Part shown: in pieces, positions 19,661 through 60,776 of the stretch
Numbering within the stretch: position 1 is the stretch's first letter
How the letters are laid out: each line of letters starts with the position of its first letter
NCBI RefSeq assembly: GCF_902713615.1
Contig: NC_052154.1
Span: forward strand, 107,482,016-107,546,015
Length of the DNA stretch: 64,000 nt
Direction: 5' to 3'
From: Scyliorhinus canicula
Taxonomy: Eukaryota
Position numbers and translations under genes: made by a program
The notes under the pieces: model-generated
Databases searched by the model: none
What the model saw: the letters and a program-made list of their open reading frames with translations, nothing else
Told to the model about the DNA's origin: nothing

Positions 19661-19696
19661 AAGGAGAACAACTCCAGGTTGTCTGATCTCACATTA

Positions 19697-19883
19697 GGGG
19701 CTGTTTAGCTCACAGGGCTAATCGCTGGCTTTGAAAGCAGACCAAAGCAAGCCAGCAGCACGGTTCGATTCCCGTAACAACCTCCCCGAACAGGCGCCTG
19801 AATGTGGCGACTAGGGGCTTTTCACATTAACTTCATTTGAAGCCTACTCGTGACAATAAGCGATTTTCATTTTTCATTTCATT
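19697..19883 (+). mobile_element. Short tRNA-derived SINE family 2 (~185 bp) with (TTCAT)n tail
   Basis: GGGGCTG-TTTAGC...GGTTCGATTCCC head; copies at 28005, 41904 and 60663. Confidence 0.85.
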
Positions 19884-20078
19884 AGTCTGGTCTCCTCATA
19901 TTATTCAAGTTCCTTATCCCTCGATTTAGTAAATTCCTTCTACACCTTTTAAAAATGTTTGACATCATTCCAAAAATGTTATGTTGAGAATATTAGCTTT
20001 TCAATTCATTCATAAAACTGCTCATTGTGTTTTTGAATTTAACAGTAAGTGTAGGTGAAAATGTATGCAAGAAAATAC

Positions 20079-21919: not shown

Positions 21920-24900
21920 TCAATGAGCTATCATTGAGGGGAGCTCATACTCCAATTGGCCAACCAATAAAGCCAATTGGAGTTCATTACACTCCTCCCC
22001 CCCAAGGTCTGAGGAATTCCTGCCAGCTGGCATTCCTCTGAGCTTCTTCCTGCTCCTCATGTCTGGGTCTGTCACCTCTGTGTCGTCCGCCGGGTCATTC
22101 TCCAAAGTGGGCGGGGTGTACCTTATAGGTGCCCGTCTTTTCCTTGACGACCTCCTTGGAAGTTGTTCTTCCTCCTCCCTGGGGAGAGGTGTCGCGGCGG
22201 CCTCGTCGAGCATATCCATCTCTGACTCTGACGACTGGATGACGGGGTCTGGAGAAATTGTTCGGGGCTGGGGTGTGGGTATCCATTCCGTCTGGGCTAT
22301 CCCAGCTTGAGGCGGCCCTGCTTCGCCTGCCTCCAGGTGTGGTTCCGCTGCCCTTATTTGGTCTAGGTGTTTCTTCAGCATCTTGCCTCCTATTGAAACC
22401 TCATAGGATATGGGCCCTGTTTGGGACTCTACCGTGCCTTTGACCCAAGTTGGACCATTCCCATAATTCTTGACCCAAACCGGTGCCCCCACCTGGAAAT
22501 GTCTCTGCTGCCGACTATTATCATTCCCCCTGCGTTGGGCCTCCTGTTGTTTCTCCACTTTCCCCGTTAAATTTGGGAAAAGGAGACTCAGCCTCGTTCG
22601 CAGCCGCCTTCCCATTAAGAGTTCAGCTGGCGGTATGCCCGTTGTGGAATGCGGTGTGGTCCTGTAATCAAACAGCCAGCGGGAGAGCTTTGTGTCCATT
22701 GTCGCTGCCGGCTGCTTCTTGAGTCCCGCTTTAAGTGTCTGGACCGCTCTCTCTGCCAGGCCGTTGGTCGCTGGATGGTAGGGGGCCGTTTTGATGTGAC
22801 GGACTCCGTTTTCCTTCAGGAATTTTCCAAATTCCCCACTTGTGAATGCCGTTCCGTTATCCGACACCAATACCTCCGGAAGTCCATGTGTTGCAAACGA
22901 GGACCTGAGATTTTCAATTGTCAATGCTGTGCTTGCCGTGTTTATCTGGTGGACGTCCAACCATTTGGAGTGGGCGTCCACTATCACCAAAAACATTGAG
23001 CCCATGAAAGGGCCGGCGTGGTCAATATGCAGGCGGGTCCACGGTCTGCCTGGCCATTCCCAAGGGTGCAATGGCGCCGCTGGTGGCACTCTTTGCCCCT
23101 CCTGGCACCGACGTACCAAGGCTGATATGTCTGTATCCAAACCTGGCCACCAAACGTAGCTTCGAGCTAGCATCTTCATTTTAGACACCCCTGGGTGTCC
23201 GTGATGTAACTCAGTTAAGATTGCCTGACAGCCCTGAGCTGGGACGATTACCCGGACTCCCCATAATAGGATACCGTCTTCTACGGTTATTTGGTCCCTT
23301 CTGCTCCAGTATGGGTGCATCTGGGGTTCCACTGGTCTTTCCAGTTCCCCGTTAGCAGTAAATGCTTCATCTTGGCTAAAACTGGGTCTTTTTGCGTCCA
23401 CAACCGAATATGTTGTGCGTCTACTGGTAGGGTGTCCAAAAAATTTAGAGTCATTAATGTCTCCTCTACTTTTGGTATTTGCGGCGGAGTGTCCGGGAGG
23501 GGAAGTCTGCTCAAAGTATCTGCATTTGCTACTCGCGTTCCCGGTCTGTGCTCCAGAACGTATCTATACGCCGCCAGTAGCAACGCCCAGCGTTGGATTC
23601 TAGCTGATGCAATCGGGGGTATTGACTTGTCTTCTTTTAATAACCCTAATAACGGCTTATGGTCCGTCACTATGGTGAATTTCCGCCCGTACAGGTAATG
23701 GTGAAATTTTTTTACTGCGAATATCACTGCCAGTCCTTCCTTCTCGATTTGGGCGTACTTCTTCTCAGCCATCGCCAAGGTCCTCGAAGCATAGGCTATT
23801 GGCCGTTCTTCCTCATTCCTTCCTCTATGGGCTAAGACGGCTCCTACCCCAGAGGGGGATGCATCACAAGTGATCACCAACTCCTTCCTTGGGTCATAAT
23901 GCTCTAGGACATTTTCGGATGACAGTTGTTCCTTCATGTCCCTAAATGCTCGGTTTTGGCGGGTGGACCATTTCCATTCTTGCCCCTTTTTTAGTAGCTG
24001 GTGGAGGGGTTCTAGGATGGACGCCCTATTTTCTATAAATTTTCCATAATAGGTTACCAACCCTAGAAATGATCGTAACTCCTGGACCGTGGTGGGAGCT
24101 GGGGCTTCTTTTATTGCCCTTACTCTGTCTTCTAATAGGTGTAAGCCTGACTTGTCTACTTTATAACCCAGGTACGTCACTTGTGGGGCCAGAAAAACAC
24201 ATTTTTCCCTTTTTAGCCGTACGCCTGCCTTTGCGAAACGCCTGAGCACTTCCTCCAGGTTCCTCAAGTGTTCCCTGTTTGTCCTACCCGTGATTAAGAC
24301 ATTGTCCAAATAAATCGCCGCCTGCGGTAGTCCCTGCAGAATATTTTCCATCGCACGCTGGAATATAGCGCAGGCTGATGACACTCCGAAAGGTAGCCTA
24401 GTATAACGAAAAAGGCCCTTCAGGGTGTTGATCATAGCGAACTTCTGGGAGCCCTTGTCCAGTTGTAACTGCAGGTAGGCGTGGCTCATGTCCAGTTTCG
24501 TGAACAAAAGCCCACCTGCTAATTTGGCATATAGGTCGTCTATTTTCGGGATTGGGTATTTGTCCAGCAGTGTGTATTTGTTTACTGTCTGTTTGAAATC
24601 TCCACAGAGACGTATCAAGCCGTCTGGCTTCAAAATTGGTACCACCGGTGCTGCCCATTCCGAGAACTGTACTGGTCTGATAATGCCGTCGCGCCGGAAA
24701 CCTTTCTATTTCATCATCTACTTTTTTCCTTAATGCAATAGGTACCGGCCTGGCCTTACAAAATTTCGGAAGGGCTTCGGGTCCATGTGCAAAGTTGCTT
24801 TGGCGCCTATGATTTCCCCCAAACCTTCCTGGAAGACCTCCGGGTATTTTTGGAGTACTCCACTCAACTGCCCGCTTCCACTCTGGAAAATTTTCATCCG

Positions 24901-26231: not shown

Positions 26232-27414
26232 ATCATTTGCCCGGAAGAAGTAACACATTCTCCCCACATACTGAGACCAGTCCTCAATAGCCGGGTCGAA
26301 TGCCTCTAACCTTCCAAAAAAACGGTATTTTTAAAATGGCAAGGCTTACCCTCCGAGTGTGGCAGCTGGTCTCCGCAAAATTCTTTTGTGTGTCCAAGGC
26401 AGTGTCCAGGCACCGGGCTCCATTGCAAGGCAGCCATCTTGCTGTGCTAACCATTGACCATCCACCTTGGACCAGTCCCGCACCCCACCCTCCGCCATAC
26501 CAGCCCCACCCAACAGGCCGCCACTCACCATCAGGGCATCACACAGCCCTTCCAAGTGCAATGCCCATAGTAGCTCCTACAGGGGATGCCTGACAGAGGC
26601 TATGGAATGTACCGTTGGCATGGGCAGCGCCAGCCGATGGTACCCCTGGCAGCAAGGACAGGAGTCAGGGCCAGAGGCCCCCACAGTTCCGGGCACCGAC
26701 GAAGAGACACTGATGGAGAGACATGCGGTGGCAGGGTCCATGTGCCAACTATGTTGCCCAGTAGACCTGGTTGGACATTGAGTTACGCACCATGCTAACA
26801 TGTGTGCCGTTCACCCCCTGCAGACAGTGGATATTGGAATTCAATCAGTAATGGTGGCCTTCCCCCTAGTCACAGCAGCCATGGGGGATGCAGCTGTACC
26901 AGCTGGAGCTGCTCGAGGAGGAGGAAGCTGCAGCAAAAGTCTGCCCTAGAGGAACAGATGGAGACGGATGGAGAGCCGGCTGCCGAACAGGCTGAGGAGG
27001 GGGAGGTGCAAAGGAGCCACCGCATGAGGCCTCGTGTATACTGGCAGTGCCTGTCATTTGAGGACCTGCGGGATCGGGCATGCAGTCGAAAACTTCAGCT
27101 GAGCGTGGGGGCAGTGCAACACATCTGCCAAATCATGCCACACCTTGCACCATGGGGGAATGGGGAGGACACCCATCCCATCAAGGTGACGGTCGCCTCA
27201 ACGTTTATGCCAAATGGTCCAAGTAGGGACCTGTCTGAGAACTTGATGCACAGGTGCATCCACGCCATCATGGAGAACCTATATGCCCAGTCGGCACAAT
27301 ACATCTATTGTAATGTGCACTTAGCCCACCAGGATACCCGAGCAGTGAGGTTTGCTGCCACTGCCTAGATGCCCCGGGCCCAGGGGTGTTCGGCAGGATG
27401 CATGTCACTCTACA

Positions 27415-27994
27415 TGTGGTATTGTGTGAAGCAAATAATGGCATGATGGGAAAACTAGTCAAGTCTTCTTGGTACAATTGAATTTAACCTAAGACACAGA
27501 TTCAGAATACACATAGACAGCATGTCCTGAGAACTGGGTGACTCTGAGAGTCTAGATAAGGCTTGAACTTAGAAGCAGTCTCAATACATAACAAGCTGAA
27601 CAACTATCTCTTCCTGTTCCTAAACAAATTCTTCCCTTTCTTAAAACAAAGACAAGATAATGATATGAAACTCCAGTCCCCTAAAGGTCAGCAAGGTGAC
27701 GCCATTGTAACGATTATTACTTATGTTTTACTTTCGATTAAATTCCTGACCAAGTTGTATTGATGTTATCTTGATCCTATAATGTATAAGAATCGCCTTC
27801 TTTTTCTGTAATATCGCAGACTTGGGACGGACTCAGCAGTTTGTACTGACTGCCTTCCGACTTCAAAAGTCTCAGCCATTTACTGCTAGCAGTCAGTTCT
27901 AATTCGGAAATAAAGTTCAGTTTTGCTTACCTAATGAATCATGTTTGTATTTCTCTATCACAGTCAAGACGCGGGGGAAATATAAAATACAACA
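27415..27994 (+). mobile_element. Solo LTR (580 bp) inside the H1 transposase
   Basis: TGTGGTATT...AATACAACA; TSD TACA; AATAAA near the 3' end. Confidence 0.85.
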
Positions 27995-28004
27995 TACAAC
28001 ATCA

Positions 28005-28190
28005 GGGGCTGGTTTAGCACACTGGGCTAAATCGCTGGCTTTTAAAGCAGACCAAGGCAGGCCAGCAGCACGGTTCAATTCCCGTACCAGCCTCCCCGAA
28101 CAGGCGCCGGAATGTGGCGACTAGGGGCTTTTCACAGTAACTTCATTGAAGCCTACTCGTGACAATAAGCTATTTTCATTTCATTTCATT
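28005..28190 (+). mobile_element. SINE family 2
   Basis: Near-identical layout to 19697-19883. Confidence 0.88.
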
Positions 28191-29306
28191 ACAAGCACCT
28201 GCAGATGACAGACCGCTCGACACAAACCGAAAAGAGTTTCACCTAATGAACGTGCATACCCAGGCAGGGTGCCTGACACCTTCACACGCAACGATTTCCG
28301 GCCTCTTCGAGAAGCACCCCCGGCTAGGGGGTTGGCTCTTGGGCAAAAGGGGTTATCCACTGCAGTCATGGCTTATGATACCTATCCGGAGGCAACAGGC
28401 CGACAAAAAGACCTGCTACAACGACACCTATGCAGCAACTAGGAGCGTGATCGAACGGTGCTTCGGCATACTGAAGTTGCAGTTCAGTTATGGAACTGGA
28501 AAGTCGCCCGCATCATGGCGGCATGCTGTCCTCTGCAAACATCGCGCAGCAGAGGGGCAGCGTGCTTGAAGATGAGAATGAACACCAGGCCACATCTGAC
28601 GAAGAGGATGTGCGGGAGGGAGAGGATGGCCAGGACATGGAACCCGGGCAGGCACGGGAGGCTGCACAACGTGTGCGCCAGAGCCAACACACACAGAACG
28701 ACTCGACCACCTCCAGGTTCACCGACTAGGGGAGGGACTGGCCAGGGGCATGGGCACCACATTCCACCCCCACACCAGCCCACCCCAGCCGACTAACCCC
28801 CTCCATTATACATACCTGCCGCAATAGCGTGCGGGCCCTGGGTTGGCAGTAACCGGGTATGATCCATGGGATAGAGGATAATGACGACCCTGCTCTGCAA
28901 TGAGCTCTGGTGCTCCGCATCGTTTGACCACATCTGACTCCTGCCCACGGCAGCACTTTCCATCATCCACATGGGTGATCCCTGCATGTAAGCTAGCCAT
29001 TCCATCACACGGTCCCTGGGGTGGTGGAGGTTGGAACAATGGGAGGGCTCGGGGAGTGGTGCGGGATGGTAGGTTGGGAATGGGATACCAGCAGGTGAGC
29101 ATTGGCCGAACTGCCCCCCAAGGCCAAGGCCACCCCCAATGTCCACCCATTCCGCCCCCGCGATCCCTTTGCGGCAACCCAGACCAGCTCACCCCTCATT
29201 CCCATCGGACAGAGCACCGAGGTAGGTTGTTAAAACATATATAGAGGACCTTTTCTTGGAGAAAGATTTCTCTCAAAATGTTTGTTATAGCCTGAGGGAA
29301 GCAACA

Positions 29307-30331
29307 ATGATTGCACTGATAGCGCTGGTCCATCTGCGTGGAGAGGTGTCTGCAGGCTTTCACTCTCTCTGGTATTTCGTCACGGGTATAACTCCGATCC
29401 CTGGTTTCCCTGAGGATGTAGGTATCGGTTATGTGGACGATGTCCAGTTTGTTATGTACAACAGCGATCGGAAGGTGTTGATTCCCCGGGAGCAGTGGAT
29501 GATGGACAGTGAGGGGCCTTAGTCCTGGCAACGGAAGAAGTTTGTTGCACAGAGGCAGGAGCAGTATTTCAAAAGCTGATATTCCAATCCTCATGTCCAG
29601 TACCAACCGATCAGGAGGGATCCACGTTTACCAGATGATGGATGGCTGTGACCTGAGGATTCAGCCAATACGTGTGGGATGGACAAGATTTCATCAGCTT
29701 CGACAAGAGTAACATGGTGTGGGTGACTCCGGTCCCCTGGGGAAAGAGCATCAAAAACAGATTGGAACAGAACAACGTCATCAGCCAGGGATGGAAAAAC
29801 TATCTGGAGGTGGAGTGTATCGAGTGGCTGAGGAAATACCTGGAATATAGACAGAGAGAACTGAGCGTCGTTGCCTCCATTGTGTCATTTGCCCGTCTGG
29901 GTGATTCTAACTGACTGTCCTGTGTCGTCACCGGGTTTTACCTTCAAGCCCATCGAGGTGAATCTGTGCGGAGACGAATTGGTGATTGATGTGACCCTGT
30001 CCAGTGGGATCTTACCCAATCACGAAAGGACCTACCAGATCCAGAAATGGGTGGAGTTTGATCCAGAGGACCAGGCCAAGAATTACTGTCGGGTGGAGCA
30101 CAGCGGACTGAATGAGACGCTGGTGGTGATTTATGTATCAAAGCCTCACTCCCTGATTCCTGTTACCGGTCGGGATTGTGTTCGGGATCCATGTGCTGCT
30201 CATTGCTCTAATCAATGTGGCTATCGTCATCTACAACAAGAAATGGAGAGGGAAGAGTGGCTACAATCCTACAAAGACTTCTTATGAAAGGGGTTCTGAT
30301 CCATCCTATTTATCCTGGACAGACTCTGGAG
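29307..30331 (+). pseudogene. Intronless MHC class I heavy chain-like pseudogene (leader-a1-a2-a3-TM-cytoplasmic), probably non-classical
   Basis: Leader MIALIALVHLRGEVSA; a1 HSLWYFVTGITPIPGFPE..GYVDDVQFVMYNSD; a2 HVYQMMDGCD..QYVWDGQDFISFD..YLEVECIEWLRKYL; a3 LSCVVTGF..TYQIQKWVEF..YCRVEHSGL; TM and tail KSGYNP; stops at 29520 and 29912, several frameshifts and an a2 deletion. Confidence 0.93.
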
Positions 30332-30400
30332 CAGTGGTTCCCAATCTTTTATATGTCATGTCACACCTTTATACTATATAAAACGTTTACAGGCATCCCT
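30332..30400 (+). mobile_element. Possible hAT/Charlie-type element end truncating the class I tail
   Basis: CAGTGGTTCCCAA terminal motif only. Confidence 0.35.
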
Positions 30401-31049
30401 CCCATTTTTGTGCCTTCTCCCCTTACTTGGAATGTTGTTTTTAATTTCTCCCTGTCCTCTCTCATGTTTTTTTTAAACCTGTCTCTGTCTCTATCGCTTC
30501 TCCCAGGGTTTCCTGCCCTTTTTGAGTTTTCACTTTTTGGGCAGGCATACCAGACCTTTGTCTTCAGCTCCAAGTCCCGTTAGCCAGGTGCATGGGCCTG
30601 ACCAACATCAAAAATCTAAACTTTGCTTTTGTGCCTCTTTTCCAGACACCACATCGGAGATGCCAAACTCAGAGCTGTTGAATTTTGATTAATTTTTGCA
30701 GCACACTGGTTTCGAATCCATCTCACTCACTGCCAATTCATTCATTGGCAGCTATTTCTCCCTGCCAGCTCCTCTCCTGCTGTTCCCAGATAATACTTGG
30801 AGTCCCTAAATGGAGCTCTCGGTAGGTGCGAAAAGGAGCGCCATGCTCCTGGCCTATGGCACTGGAAGCAATTTGGTTCACACCCTTGCTGGGCATGAAC
30901 CAGATTTGTACATTTAAACTAATTTAAACACGTATTCCTGTTTCTCTGCCCCGAGCCTCCCAGCTCCTGAGATTCTCCGCCCGGAGCCTCCCAGTTCCCA
31001 GGACTCTCCGCCCCCCAGCAAGGCATGAGGCCGGCGGAAATCACTACTG

Positions 31050-33705
31050 GGGCGAAATTCTCCGACCCCACGCAGGGTCGGAGAATCGGCCGGCAGCGGC
31101 GTTAATCCCGCTCCCGCAGGGTTTTTAAATCTCTGACCGGCCAAAAACCGGCGCTGTGCAAATCCCGCCGGCAGCCTCTGAAAACAGCTGGCGCCGGTGG
31201 GATTTCATTTTTTTTTTAGTTTCCACAAATCTCCGGCCCGGATGGGCCGAAGTCCCGCCGACGTGGCCACGGGTCACGTCGGCGAAAATCATAGTTGCTT
31301 TAAAACGGCGTCAACCATTGATGATGGTTGACGCCGTTCAGTGTCGGGGGGTGGGTTGCGGCATCGGGGGGGGGGTGGGTTGCGGCAGCGGGGGGGGGGG
31401 TGCGGCATCGGGGGGGGTTTGCGGCATCGGGGGGGGTTGCGGCATCGGGGGGTGGGTTGCGGCATCGGGGGGGTGGGTTGCGGCATCGGGGGGTGGGTTG
31501 CGGCATCGGGGGGTGGGTTGCGGCATCGGGGGGTGGGTTGCGGCATCGGGGGGGGTTTGCGGCATCCGGGGGGGGGTTGCGGCATCCGGGGTGGGTTGCG
31601 GCATCGGGGGGGGGCATCGGGGGGGGGTTGCGGCATCGGGGGGGGGTTGCGGCATCGGGGGGGGGGTTGCAGGCATCGGGGGGTGGGTTGCGGGCATCGG
31701 GGGGTGGGTTGCGGCATCGGGGGGTGGGTTGCGGCATCGGGGGGTGGGTTGCGGCATCCGGGGGGGGTTGCGGCATCCGGGGGGGGTTGCGGCACCGGGG
31801 GGGGTTGCGGCATCGGGGGGGTTGCGGCATCGGGGTGGGGAGGGTGGGTTGCGGCATTGGGGGGGGTTGCGGCATCGGGGGGGGTGGGTTGCGGCATCGG
31901 GGGGGGTGGGTTGCGGCATCGGGGGGGGTTGCGGCATCGGGGGGGGGTTTGGGGGCAGCGGCATGCAAAGAGGGGGGGCGGCGGATGCCCGGGGCCAACG
32001 CACCGTCGCCCCCCCCCTCTGTACGCCGCTGCCCCCTACCCCAACCACCCCGCCCTCACCACCCCTACCTCCCTCCAACGCCCCTACCCCCCCCACCACC
32101 CCACCCCCCTCCCCACCACCCCTACCCCCCTCCAACGCCGCCCCCCCCATCTCTCGCAACGCCGCAACCCCCCACCCTCAACGCCGCAACCCCCCCTCAT
32201 CGCCGCAACCCCCCCCTCTCAACGCCGGGTCCCCCCCTCTCAACACCGGGTCCCCCCCCCCTCAACGCCGGTACCCACACACCGTCCCCCTCCCTCTGAA
32301 GGCCGGTACCCACACACCCCCCCCTCTCTCCTCCTACCCCCCTTCCTTCCTCCTCCCCCCCTTCTTCCTCCTCCCCCCTTCCTTCCTCCGTCCCCCCTCC
32401 TTCCTCCTCCCCCCCTTCTTCCTCCTCCCCCCCTTCCTTCCTCCGTCCCCCCTCCTTCCTCCTCCCCCCTTCCTTCCTCCGTTAGTGGGGGGGGGGGTGC
32501 GGCGTTGGAGGGGGGTAGGGGTGGTGAAGGGGGTAGGGGTGGTGAGGGGAGGGGGTTGGGGTAGGGGCAGCTGCGTGCAGAGGGGGGGCGATGGTGCGTT
32601 GGACCCGGGCATCCGTCGTCCCCCTCCTCTGCACGCCGTTGCCCCTACCCCAACCCCCCCTCACCACCCCTACCCCCCTCCAACGCCGCACCCCCCCACC
32701 CCCCACCCCCCACTAACGCCGCACCCCCCCCCCCCACTAACGGAGGAAGGAAGGGGGGGAGGAAGGAAGGGGGGGGACGGAGGAAGGAAGGGGGGGAGGA
32801 GGAAGAAGGGGGGGAGGAGGAAGGAAGGGGGGGAGGAGGAAGGAAGGGGGGGAGGAGGAGAGAGGGGGGGGTGTGGGTACCGGCCTTCAGAGGGAGGGGG
32901 ACGGGGTGTGGGTACCGGCGTTGAGGGGGGGGGACCCGGCGTTGAGGGGGGGGTTGCGGCGTTGCGAGAGATGGGGGGGGCGGCGTTGGAGGGGGGTAGG
33001 GGTGGTGGGGAGGGGGGTTGGGGTGGTGGGGAGGGAGGTAGGGGTGGTGGGGAGGGGGGTAGGGGTGGTGGGGAGGGAGGTAGGGGTGGTGAGGGGGGGT
33101 GGTTGGGGTAGGGGGCAGCGGCGTACAGAGGGGGGGGCGACGGTGCGTTGGCCCCGGGCATCCGTCGCCCCCCCCCTCTGCACGCCGCTGCCCCCAAACC
33201 CCCCCCCGATGCCGCAACCCCCCCCCCCCCGATGCCGCAACTCCCCCCCCCCCGATGCCGCAACCCCCCCCCCAAATGCCGGAACCCCCCCCCCCCAAAT
33301 GCCGGAACCCCCCACCCTCCGATGCCGCAACCCCCCACCCCAAATGCCGGAACCCCCCCCCAAATGCTGGAACCCCCCCCCCCCGATGCCGCAAACCCCC
33401 CCCCCCCCAAATGCCAGACCCCCCCCCAAATGCCGGAACCCCCCCCCAAATGCCGGGTCTGTCTCTCTCCTCCCCCCCCCCCCCCCAAACGCCGGGTCAG
33501 TCTCTCTCCTCCTCCTCCTCCAAAAAAACGCCGGGTCTCACCACTTCTGCAGCTGGTGAAACTGACGCGTATCGCGTCAGTCAGCTGCTGGCCCCTCCGG
33601 GAACGGAGAATCGCCGCCTAAAAGAAGGCCCCCACGCCGGAGTCATCTACTCCAATTTTGCTCGCCGGAAATCGGCGTTACGACGATCTGCAGAGAATTT
33701 CGCCC
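31050..33705 (+). mobile_element. Large Harbinger-type non-autonomous element with an internal G/C-rich nested palindrome
   Basis: TIR GGGCGAAATTCTC / GAGAATTTCGCCC, flanks CTG/CTA; both ends shared with 57828-59582; array of CGGCATC(G)nTGGGTTG units at 31340-31950 and inverted at 33200-33450. Confidence 0.85.
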
Positions 33706-34654
33706 CTAGTCTCCATCAACATAGACCTGATGTGATGATCAGGCTGGGCCATTGGAGCATCCGAGCGCTCAGTGAGGCAGTGCCACTGCTATGTTGGCAC
33801 CACCAATGAGTGGCGCCAGAAAGGGGAGAGAGTTGGAGGGGGGGAAACTGAAAGAGGGGTGGAAGTGAGGGGAAGGGAGGAAACGTCTCAAAATGGGGAA
33901 TAGGGCAGTTGGCGACCCCAAATCAGGGTGTTAGTCATTTGGGATGTGGAGGGGGGCTGGATTTCTGCCAGTGCTATAGACGGGGTGTCTATCGGCTTGT
34001 CTGGAGATCAAACTGCCCTTTAGAAATTGCGCCCCCACCCCATCTCTGAGGAACAAGCCTAGCTGGCATCTTTAGATCCTGCACACTTCTTTCCTGGCAG
34101 GAAACTTCCCAAGCTCCAAAGAACTGACTAAGGATGGGAGAATTCCAATGGGAATCGCACCAGAACAGCCAGTGGAATTCACACCGGTTTTCCTGCCCGA
34201 AATGACTGCCATTATTGAGGCGAATGCCGCCCATTGCTTTCATTATGAGGTTGGGTGAGCATGCGGAATGAGGGCATCTGCTGCCTGGGCCAGTCCCAGA
34301 GACTAACACTGGCATGGGGAAGTAAGGTAGAGCTAAAACCATAGGCTGAAATCAAGAGGAATGAACTGCTGGGGATTAGGGATCCTATTTCTCAGAGATA
34401 CTATGAAGACGTGAGGATGTTTTGTTTGTGTTTTTCAAACCAGAATCTGTTTCTCCAATTTTTAAACTTATAAAAATTTAAAACTCCAATTTCTACAATA
34501 AACTATACATATTTTTTGCTTCCTGTCTCTGTAAAGTCCTCCGAACAAAACTAATACCACTATGGTGGAGAACATTGATACTTTAAGAAATAAATTATGA
34601 GGAATCCAAAAAAAAACATTAAAACAAATGCATCCCAGAGAGTATCACCTCGGT

Positions 34655-41903: not shown

Positions 41904-41979
41904 TGAAATGCAAATCGCTTATTGTCACGAGTAGGCTTCAATGAAGTTACTGTGAAAAGCCCCTAGTCGCCACATTCCG
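41904..41979 (-). mobile_element. SINE family 2, 5'-truncated, in Gypsy C
   Basis: Reverse complement of the family-2 3' half. Confidence 0.75.
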
Positions 41980-54900: not shown

Positions 54901-55479
54901 GAGTAAGTTGGTACGGGTGCAGGGCACAGACAAGTTATAGGACTAGGGCACGTATATGGACTGTTTGTCATTAAAATCACTTTCACACATACTAATTTGC
55001 CTTTGTGTGAGGTGAGCGCCAGTGTGTGTGTGTGTGTGAGGGGTGGTATTACGTCGGTCCCAGGTGAGTATGCCCGCCCTCTCCCCAGGTCGCCCTCGCC
55101 ATCCCCCTAGGCAGAGGACGGGACCGTGTGCTGCAGTGTCACGGCCGCATGCAGGGATGGTCCGGCTGGAGGGTGGTACCGTGGCCATGGGTCAGACATT
55201 GTCCAACGATGTAGAGCCAGGAGCTCATCACAAAGCGGGTCATCATCATCCTCCATGGCATGCAATAGACACGCTTCCACCGGCGACCATGTGAACCCGG
55301 CCCGTTGTGCCGCAGGTGGATGTGCAATGGAGGGGTGGTGTTCATGCGGGTGGGGTGGGGGTGGTTGGTGGTGGGTGGCTGGCAGGGGGGTGAGGGTATT
55401 GGTGGTGGGTGGGTGGGGGGGGTGAGTGTGTTGGTGTATTGGGGGGGTGAGTGTGTTGGTGGTGGGTGGGAGGGGGGAT

Positions 55480-56775
55480 GAGAGTGGTCAGCTGGTGCCG
55501 TGGTGTGCGGCCTGTGCCATACTCGGCGATTCCCATGCCCCCCTAGCTAGTGAACCGTGCGGCTATCAGCCTGTCCCATGCCCGCTCCTCCAGCCAGTCT
55601 GTCCTGACCATTGCCCCCATCCTCCTCATCTGGGGAGGACTGCGTCTCATCCTGCTGCTCCTCAACTCCCCCCTCTTCTGCCTGCAACACATTGCCCCTC
55701 TGCTGGGCGATGTTGTGCAGGACGCAGCACACCACAATGATGTGGCCTACCCTATCTGGCGGGTACTGGAGGACCCCTCCAGAGCGGTCCAGGCTTCTGA
55801 AACGCATTTTTAGCAGGCCAAAGCACCTCTCTATCACACCCCTGGTCGCTGCATCGGCATCATTGTAGCTGTTCTCCACGTCACTGCGTGGCCTCCGTAT
55901 AGGCGTCATCAGCCACGACCGCAACGGGTAACCCCTGTCACCCAGCAACCAGCCACTCAGCCGGGGTGGCGTCCCTCGAACATGCCGGGATGTAAGACTG
56001 CGCGAATACTATGAGTCATGTACACTTCCCGGGTACCGGGCGCAGACGTGCAGGATCATCATGCGGTGGTCGCAGCCCACCTGAATGTTCATGGAGTAGG
56101 TCCCCCTCCTATAAGTGAATACGGCCCTGTTATCTGCAAGTAGCCGCACGGCGATGTGCATCCCATTGTTCGTGCCCTGGACCATGGGAAACCCGGCCAC
56201 GGCAGCGAAGCCCGCTGCCCGGGCATCCTGGCTGGCCCGGTCCATAGGAAACTGGATGTAGCGGTCTGCAATGGAATATAGGGCAACTCTCACTGCCCGG
56301 ATGCACCGATGCCTGCGAGATGCCAGACAGCGCCCCACTCGTCGCCTGGAATGACCCCGTGGCATCCTGTAACCTGTAACCTTGACGGACACGGGGAGAG
56401 GGTGTCCTCCCCCAGTGCCACGCGGTGCCTGGTGTGCTATCAGGTGACAGATGTATGCTACGGTTTCCAGGCTCATCCGGAGTCTCCTCCTGCATGCCCG
56501 GTCCGTGAGGTCCTGGTACGACAAGCGGGACCGGTACACACGGGGCCTCCTCGGGCTTCTCCAACGCCGTGGCACAGCCACCTCCTCCTCCTCGTCCTGT
56601 CGGGCAGGCGGCACTCCAGTCTGGGCGGCTGCCACCTGCCCCTCTGCAGCATGCTTCTCTACGGCAGCCTGCACCGCCCCCCCTGGCACGCTCCTCCTCC
56701 TCCTCCCCCAGGCCAACATGTAGAAGTGCGGCTGCCATGGCAACTAACATCGCTGGCTGATCAGCAAACATAACG
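55480..56775 (-). pseudogene. Harbinger DDE transposase (HARBI1-like family), frameshifted
   Basis: RPRVYRSRLSYQDL..RRLRMS; GFAAVAGFPMVQG; SMNIQVGCD..ARYPGSVHDS; LGDRGYPLRSWLMTP; RGVIERCFGLLKMRF. Confidence 0.92.
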
Positions 56776-60662: not shown

Positions 60663-60776
60663 TGAAAGGAAATGAAAAATGAAAATCGCTTATTGTCACG
60701 AGTAGGCTTCAATGAAGTTACTGTGAAAAGCCCCTAGTCGCCACATTCCGGCGCCTGTCCAGGGAGGCTGGTACGG
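60663..60776 (-). mobile_element. SINE family 2, 5'-truncated
   Basis: Reverse complement of the family-2 3' part. Confidence 0.8.

Follow-up and report, generated by a model that had tools for sequence, protein, structure and literature searches.

Within the 64-kb window that we analyzed (64,000 nucleotides of the Scyliorhinus canicula contig NC_052154.1), one MHC class I sequence is present, an intronless and broken copy on the forward strand. Translation of 29250-30400 in three frames, together with tblastn searches that used five shark class I proteins, yields a single colinear, frame-hopping class I reading over 29292-30327 (+), and tblastn with the same proteins revealed no second class I stretch elsewhere in the 64 kb. 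Leader, a1, a2, a3, connecting peptide, transmembrane (TM) segment and partial cytoplasmic tail follow one another with all domain junctions seamless (Table 1). An earlier note, made from the letters alone, had described the copy as contiguous from leader to tail. This holds for the domain junctions, but the tail is incomplete: homology is secure to about 30282-30306 and fades between ~30282 and 30327. In the leader, an in-frame ATG lies at 29307, and a CTG at 29292 stands in the alignment opposite Met1 of Mustelus and S. torazame relatives.

Pfam MHC_I scored above its gathering score on both the a1 piece (29307-29519) and the a2 piece (29663-29911), and the nearest solved structure for these two pieces is the nurse shark UAA 6LUP (1e-15 and 3e-20, respectively). 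The broken a3 piece gave a weak C1-set match below the cut-off (E 0.013). Alignment places both C1-set cysteines in a3, followed by TM and tail, which match the Mustelus asterias protein P0007 at 64% in tblastn. With its a1/a2 homology, an a3 that carries the cysteines, and a TM segment and tail, the copy is derived from an MHC class I heavy chain.

The copy had been placed in a desert of transposable elements (TEs). Instead, it is surrounded by a Harbinger-like remnant, a tRNA-derived SINE, gypsy sequence and LINE reverse transcriptase (RT) fragments. Upstream, as far as the bin 29209-29309, the DNA runs reach hundreds to thousands of times the depth of single-copy sequence. A candidate splice acceptor (tttgttatag, 29281-29290), put forward in favor of a 5'UTR intron, lies in or beside this high-copy repeat, and the start codons of relatives align at 29292 and 29307, right after the motif; such an intron is not supported. 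By read depth, the Harbinger/PIF family numbers from hundreds to thousands of copies in each of the two shark species considered here, and the closest database relatives of the Ty3/gypsy pol are only 44-57% identical and come mostly from environmental and teleost assemblies. Downstream, the repeat at 30293-30621 has about 20-60 times the single-copy depth, with contigs from its other copies (82-86% identity) starting at 30293-30331; it has no Rfam or tRNA match and, by self-BLAST, no second copy in the window.

Farther downstream lies a G-rich 20-bp minisatellite of ~30 units (consensus TCGGGGGGTGGGTTGCGGCA), followed by C-rich complementary arrays. This arrangement is perhaps what the earlier note had taken for a CpG exon. 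The antisense location of the copy beside astacin exons could not be confirmed: over 1-21000, a search of all frames for astacin motifs (HExxHxxGxxHE, SxMHY or comparable) turned up nothing but a chance RxDRD match, and the ORFs near 600-1200, at 20.2-20.6 kb and at 33.5-36 kb are uninformative for an astacin gene. Besides the copy, the 64-kb window contains no MHC or MHC-framework gene.

Table 1. Features of the class I copy and its surroundings, by position in the 64-kb window
Feature	Position	Strand	Evidence or remark
LINE RT fragments	4.4-5.2 and 9.4-10.5 kb		Pfam
Ty3/gypsy pol (RT, RNase H, integrase), two overlapping frames	21920-24645	-	Pfam
Upstream flank: Harbinger/PIF-like remnant, SINE, then high-copy repeat reaching roughly the copy's 5' end	26917-29291	+	Pfam; depth
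Harbinger/PIF-like transposase remnant	26917-29053	+	Pfam DDE_Tnp_4 at 28159-28566
tRNA-derived SINE, ~190 bp, inside the Harbinger-like remnant	27999-28191	+	ARAGORN tRNA-like head at 28006-28096
Three further SINE copies	19691-19884; 60663-60776; 41904-41979	+; -; -	91-97% identity across the four copies
Leader-peptide segment (exon-1 equivalent)	29292-29354	+	tblastn: P0007 from 29292; P0175 and P0178 from 29307
a1 domain segment	29355-29616	+	Pfam MHC_I, E 4e-9; best PDB match 6LUP
Stop TAG in a1 (Glu in relatives)	29520-29522	+	Comparison with intact relatives
+1 insertion in an A run, a1	29574	+	Comparison with intact relatives
a2 domain segment, both cysteines retained	29617-29869	+	Pfam MHC_I, E 3e-14; alignment
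20-nt deletion after 29658, a2	29659	+	~7 codons ('DDGxTxG') gone, frame shifted
a3 (C1-set) segment	29870-30134	+	tblastn, 65% to P0007; alignment
Stop TGA in a3 (Arg or Gln in relatives)	29912-29914	+	Comparison with intact relatives
+1 C in a C run, a3	~29949-29951	+	Parent contigs one letter shorter there
Connecting peptide and TM segment	30135-30252	+	tblastn frame change 30167/30169; exon equivalents from bamboo-shark locus L001
+1 G, connecting peptide/TM	30168	+	tblastn frame change
Cytoplasmic tail, initial part	30253-30306	+	Alignment
Downstream flank: unclassified repeat abutting the shortened 3' end	30293-30621	+	Depth 120-380 vs. single-copy 6-11
Minisatellite and complementary arrays	31344-31949; 32033-32480; 32740-33110; 33195-33447		Large GC-rich (69%) inverted arrangement
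Second Harbinger/PIF-like copy	55083-56740	-	62-77% identity to the first; DDE_Tnp_4 remnants

Lineage and parent gene

A HMMER scan of 1.84 billion representative sequences with the a2 piece as query gave P0007 (348 aa) as the best full-length relative, and a search with P0007 as query returned 324 homologues. In a careful maximum-likelihood tree of 47 rows, for which the copy was repaired by reading through with X at every break, the copy and P0175, an intact protein of S. canicula, are sisters (support 98/93). Both fall inside a clade (100/100) of 23 galeomorph-shark rows that includes horn shark O19480 and nurse shark O19479 (Bartl et al. 1997), and the classical UAA sequences (Triakis, 6LUP, O19481) stand outside it. 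A quick tree of 76 rows agrees. P0175 is also the protein to which the copy has its highest amino-acid identity (76.8% over 332 columns).

Reviews use the name UBA for the expanded family that Bartl et al. were the first to report, and describe it as UAA-derived, multicopy and MHC-linked (PMC12562908, PMC10751288); Gici-11 of Bartl et al. is described as a multigene family (PMC1513397). We read the clade here as UBA because of its clustering with the Bartl sequences of 1997, together with the reviews, rather than by a named reference set. That O19480 and O19479 are UBA is our reading of a review (PMC12562908). The copy descends from this lineage, for which Almeida et al. 2021 is a further reference.

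Motifs in the alignment agree with this placement. The string 'RL[DE]QNNV', with R146 and L147 (K146>R, W147>L), is present in the copy and P0175 only, and 'NLC', a cysteine in place of the Ig-fold tryptophan of a3, is found in the copy and all Scyliorhinus UBA rows and is absent in Mustelus. Among the classical peptide-anchor residues, Y7, Y159 and Y171 are retained; Y59>S and T143>I are UBA-wide, the changes at 146 and 147 are those also seen in P0175, and R84>S is private to the copy. The label non-classical given in the earlier note is therefore correct, but it describes a property of the known UBA lineage and does not define a new one. The copy had also been said to depart from the classical pattern by reading 'HSLWYF' in a1. 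This R>W change is a C>T transition at the CpG at 29370, and parent mRNA contigs as well as the copy of a sister species have C (Arg) there, so that it is no lineage trait.

As an observation on the intact genes, the Scyliorhinus UBA proteins P0175, P0176, P0177, P0191, P0197, P0200 and P0208 all read 'NLCRDG', whereas Mustelus, horn shark and nurse shark read 'NLWRDG'; the cysteine in place of a near-invariant tryptophan is odd in apparently functional Scyliorhinus genes. Elsewhere in the family, the 140.55-Mb chromosome of Mustelus asterias carries a large recent UBA expansion, with one cluster of 11 at 90% identity and several further clusters, among them models that join several genes into as many as 1069 aa.

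Intact UBA genes contain introns, as judged from gene ranges of 7.4-26 kb for proteins of ~345 aa and from exons that lie kilobases apart. Gene length is 7433 bp for P0007, about 20 kb for the gene of 345 aa that occupies the 3' end of the P0175 range, and about 26 kb for P0177; in Chiloscyllium punctatum (locus L001), the a1, a3, TM and cytoplasmic exons are at ~6.0, 24.6, 28.0 and 29.1 kb. Among the 324 P0007 homologues, for which gene ranges were checked, no intact intronless relative was found. One candidate for a second intronless copy, the partial S. torazame sequence P0001 with a1 and a2 within 619 bp, was rejected: by eye, it is ~90% like the intact P0176, and a short intron between a1 and a2 would fit its additional 184 bp.

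An expressed, spliced parent mRNA is present in the same species. Runs were treated as RNA where they had no depth on the unique flanks, and contigs were placed at a likeness of at least 80%. Two RNA contigs (X9 rec 30, covering 29591-29933 at 89%, and X26 rec 13, covering 29710-30103 at 90.6%) are colinear with the copy across the a1/a2/a3 junctions at 89-91% identity; the former is 20 letters longer than the window and includes the nucleotides deleted from a2. A further contig with a depth of ~2.8 at 29876-30192, from the apparent RNA run X9, carries the letters of the pseudogene itself. This could reflect low-level transcription, host-gene pre-mRNA or DNA carry-over, and is too weak to call expression.

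Lesions, orthologous copy and age

Comparison with relatives placed the two stops, several frameshifts and short a2 deletion that had been noticed from the sequence. In total, two stops, three +1 insertions and one 20-nt deletion interrupt the copy, which is non-functional and encodes no working protein; a frame-0 TGA at 29577 is out of frame. The stretch is contained in S. canicula DNA runs from two studies. In a second individual (X3), contigs that differ from the window by 1-4 mismatches and one 1-letter gap cover 29425-29703 and 30013-30277 and span four of the lesions (TAG 29520, +1 29574, the deletion at 29659 and +1 30168). Since a second individual has the same lesions, the copy is not an assembly artifact. 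DNA depth shows it to be single-copy.

A related species (organism B) carries an orthologous copy at ~95%. Its DNA contigs, of single-copy depth, tile 29173-30989 at 93-96% identity, and one of them (rec 2) runs from the upstream repeat into the leader across the 5' junction also present in the window. The copy in organism B likewise has T at 29520 and the additional base at 29949. Hence, TAG 29520 and the frameshift at ~29949 predate the split of the two species, and the copy was already dead in their common ancestor. At 29912, both the parent contigs and the copy in organism B have C (CGA in the latter), and at 29370 organism B reads CGG; TGA 29912 and 'HSLWYF' are thus later CpG transitions in the S. 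canicula line. Over 29425-29857, the copy in organism B is ~14 letters longer than the window, so that the a2 deletion, at least at its present extent, probably also postdates the species split.

The two species' copies have diverged by ~4.9% (57/1159), and the copy has diverged from the parent mRNA contigs by ~10.5% (120/1143). From the ratio of these values, and assuming a slower parent, the insertion would be about three times as old as the species split. The 'NLC' motif and the tree place it later than the Mustelus split. In the careful tree, the terminal branch of the copy measures 0.28 versus 0.094 for P0175.

Origin of the copy

The explanation that we favor, at a probability of about 0.9, is that the copy is a processed pseudogene of the known, intron-containing shark UBA lineage: old, single-copy and non-functional. 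All parental introns are precisely absent, and the copy is colinear with the mRNA of an expressed and spliced parent. Two other marks of retroposition are lacking. In 30250-34000, there is no A-rich 20-mer and no AATAAA or ATTAAA, and at either candidate 3' border there is no direct repeat of at least 9 nt and none of 10-14 nt with 1-3 mismatches; an old or rearranged copy would be expected to lack a target-site duplication. The template would have been a spliced mRNA from a UBA-lineage gene of a catshark, closest to the P0175 gene; it would have been copied into DNA, presumably by LINE-type reverse transcription, and a single DNA copy would have inserted beside or into the Harbinger-like remnant, probably away from the chromosome that bears the MHC. 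This would have occurred after the catshark and Mustelus lineages separated and well before the split of the two related species. Having arrived without a promoter, the copy would have been disabled by TAG 29520 and the +1 at ~29949 in the common ancestor, with neutral decay since then adding the CpG-derived TGA, the R>W change, more frameshifts and the a2 deletion.

The 3' end is less easily accommodated. The copy lacks the stop codon, the 3'UTR and the last ~15 codons, homology ending 30-50 nt before the expected stop; parent RNA contigs reach no farther than 30282, and RNA contigs give no depth over the unique sequence at 30623-30824. Retrocopies made by target priming usually lack their 5' part, and a 3' truncation is unusual for simple target-primed reverse transcription. 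The missing end might be due to a later TE insertion or deletion or to a template switch from another repeat RNA. The latter, a variant of the processed-pseudogene explanation and not a separate origin, would make the copy a chimera for which reverse transcription started on the RNA of the repeat now at 30293-30621 and switched to the UBA mRNA near the coding end, accounting for the absent 3'UTR, poly(A) and stop codon. In its favor, class I homology stops exactly where the moderately repeated element begins, de Bruijn contigs from organism B are interrupted at 30293-30297, poly(A) and target-site duplication are both absent, and CR1-like LINEs dominate shark genomes (PMC1513397). However, the repeat matches nothing in Rfam or among tRNAs and has no other copy in the window, and a later TE insertion or deletion would look identical. 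We regard such a chimera as possible but on balance doubtful.

The earlier note had left two origins side by side, a processed retrocopy and descent from a multigene lineage of single-exon genes, of which the copy would be a dead member. The colinear spliced parent contigs and the introns of relatives bear out the former. A once-functional single-exon class I retrogene or lineage might seem attractive given that the coding region is nearly full length and begins at the start codons of relatives, and that the platypus has an intronless class I sequence with an intact ORF (PMC2375005). Nevertheless, the copy nests within intron-containing UBA beside an intact catshark gene, has single-copy depth and is without an intact intronless relative among the homologues checked; the sister species carries two of the disabling lesions, the terminal branch of the copy has three times the length of that of P0175, and upstream there is only TE sequence and nothing promoter-like that is unique. 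Together, these findings make a single-exon lineage highly improbable. Contamination and large DNA viruses can likewise supply intronless immune genes, but an assembly artifact, cDNA contamination or a captured class I homologue borne by a virus is scarcely conceivable here, as DNA contigs with both flanks exist in two S. canicula samples and a second species, the copy is frameshifted with ~90% DNA identity to host mRNA, and nearby there are only Harbinger, gypsy and LINE fragments and no viral genes.

The closest known counterpart of the copy is the P0175 gene, annotated by NCBI as 'H-2 class I histocompatibility antigen, Q9 alpha chain-like isoform X2'. The two share R146/L147 and 'NLC' in addition to their sister position in the tree, and at the nucleotide level the copy is ~90% identical to the mRNA contigs. 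In contrast to the intronless, broken, single-copy and TE-surrounded copy, the P0175 gene is intact, extends over ~20 kb with introns, and lies on the 163.47-Mb chromosome, clustered with other class I genes. With the UBA lineage as a whole, the copy shares its place in the clade of O19480 and O19479 and the lineage-wide Y59>S and T143>I. UBA genes, however, are described as multicopy and clustered within the MHC, with c4 and rxrb on the flanks (Verissimo et al. 2023, PMC10751288), whereas the copy is a single class I sequence with no MHC neighbor in 64 kb, where the nearby ORFs are only TE-derived. Lacking cluster membership, it is a derivative of the UBA lineage and not a member of the cluster.

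Outside sharks, the platypus carries a processed class I pseudogene on chromosome 3, away from the MHC (PMC2375005), and the tammar wallaby a DAB processed pseudogene (PMC3179965); both are, like the shark copy, intronless and mRNA-derived. The platypus copy has kept a 359-aa ORF, whereas the shark copy is much more decayed. The wallaby copy has kept a putative poly(A) tail, in contrast to the shark copy, which is without its 3' end and is common to two species.

What was found is an ordinary processed pseudogene rather than a novel type of MHC gene, and its import for immunology is small because it encodes nothing. According to Verissimo et al. (PMC10751288), every class I gene of elasmobranchs maps to the MHC, and the corresponding statement that no elasmobranch class I lies outside it holds for genes but probably not for retro-debris; a dead retrocopy off the MHC, if so located, would be a trivial exception to MHC linkage. 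It is rather unlikely that we are looking at the first elasmobranch class I-derived sequence off the MHC, perhaps arisen as a poly(A)-independent, template-switch fusion of UBA and a repeat, and perhaps active for a brief period as a retrogene before its death in the common ancestor. As a single-copy insertion common to two species and with lesions that can be ordered, the copy is usable as a dated neutral marker.
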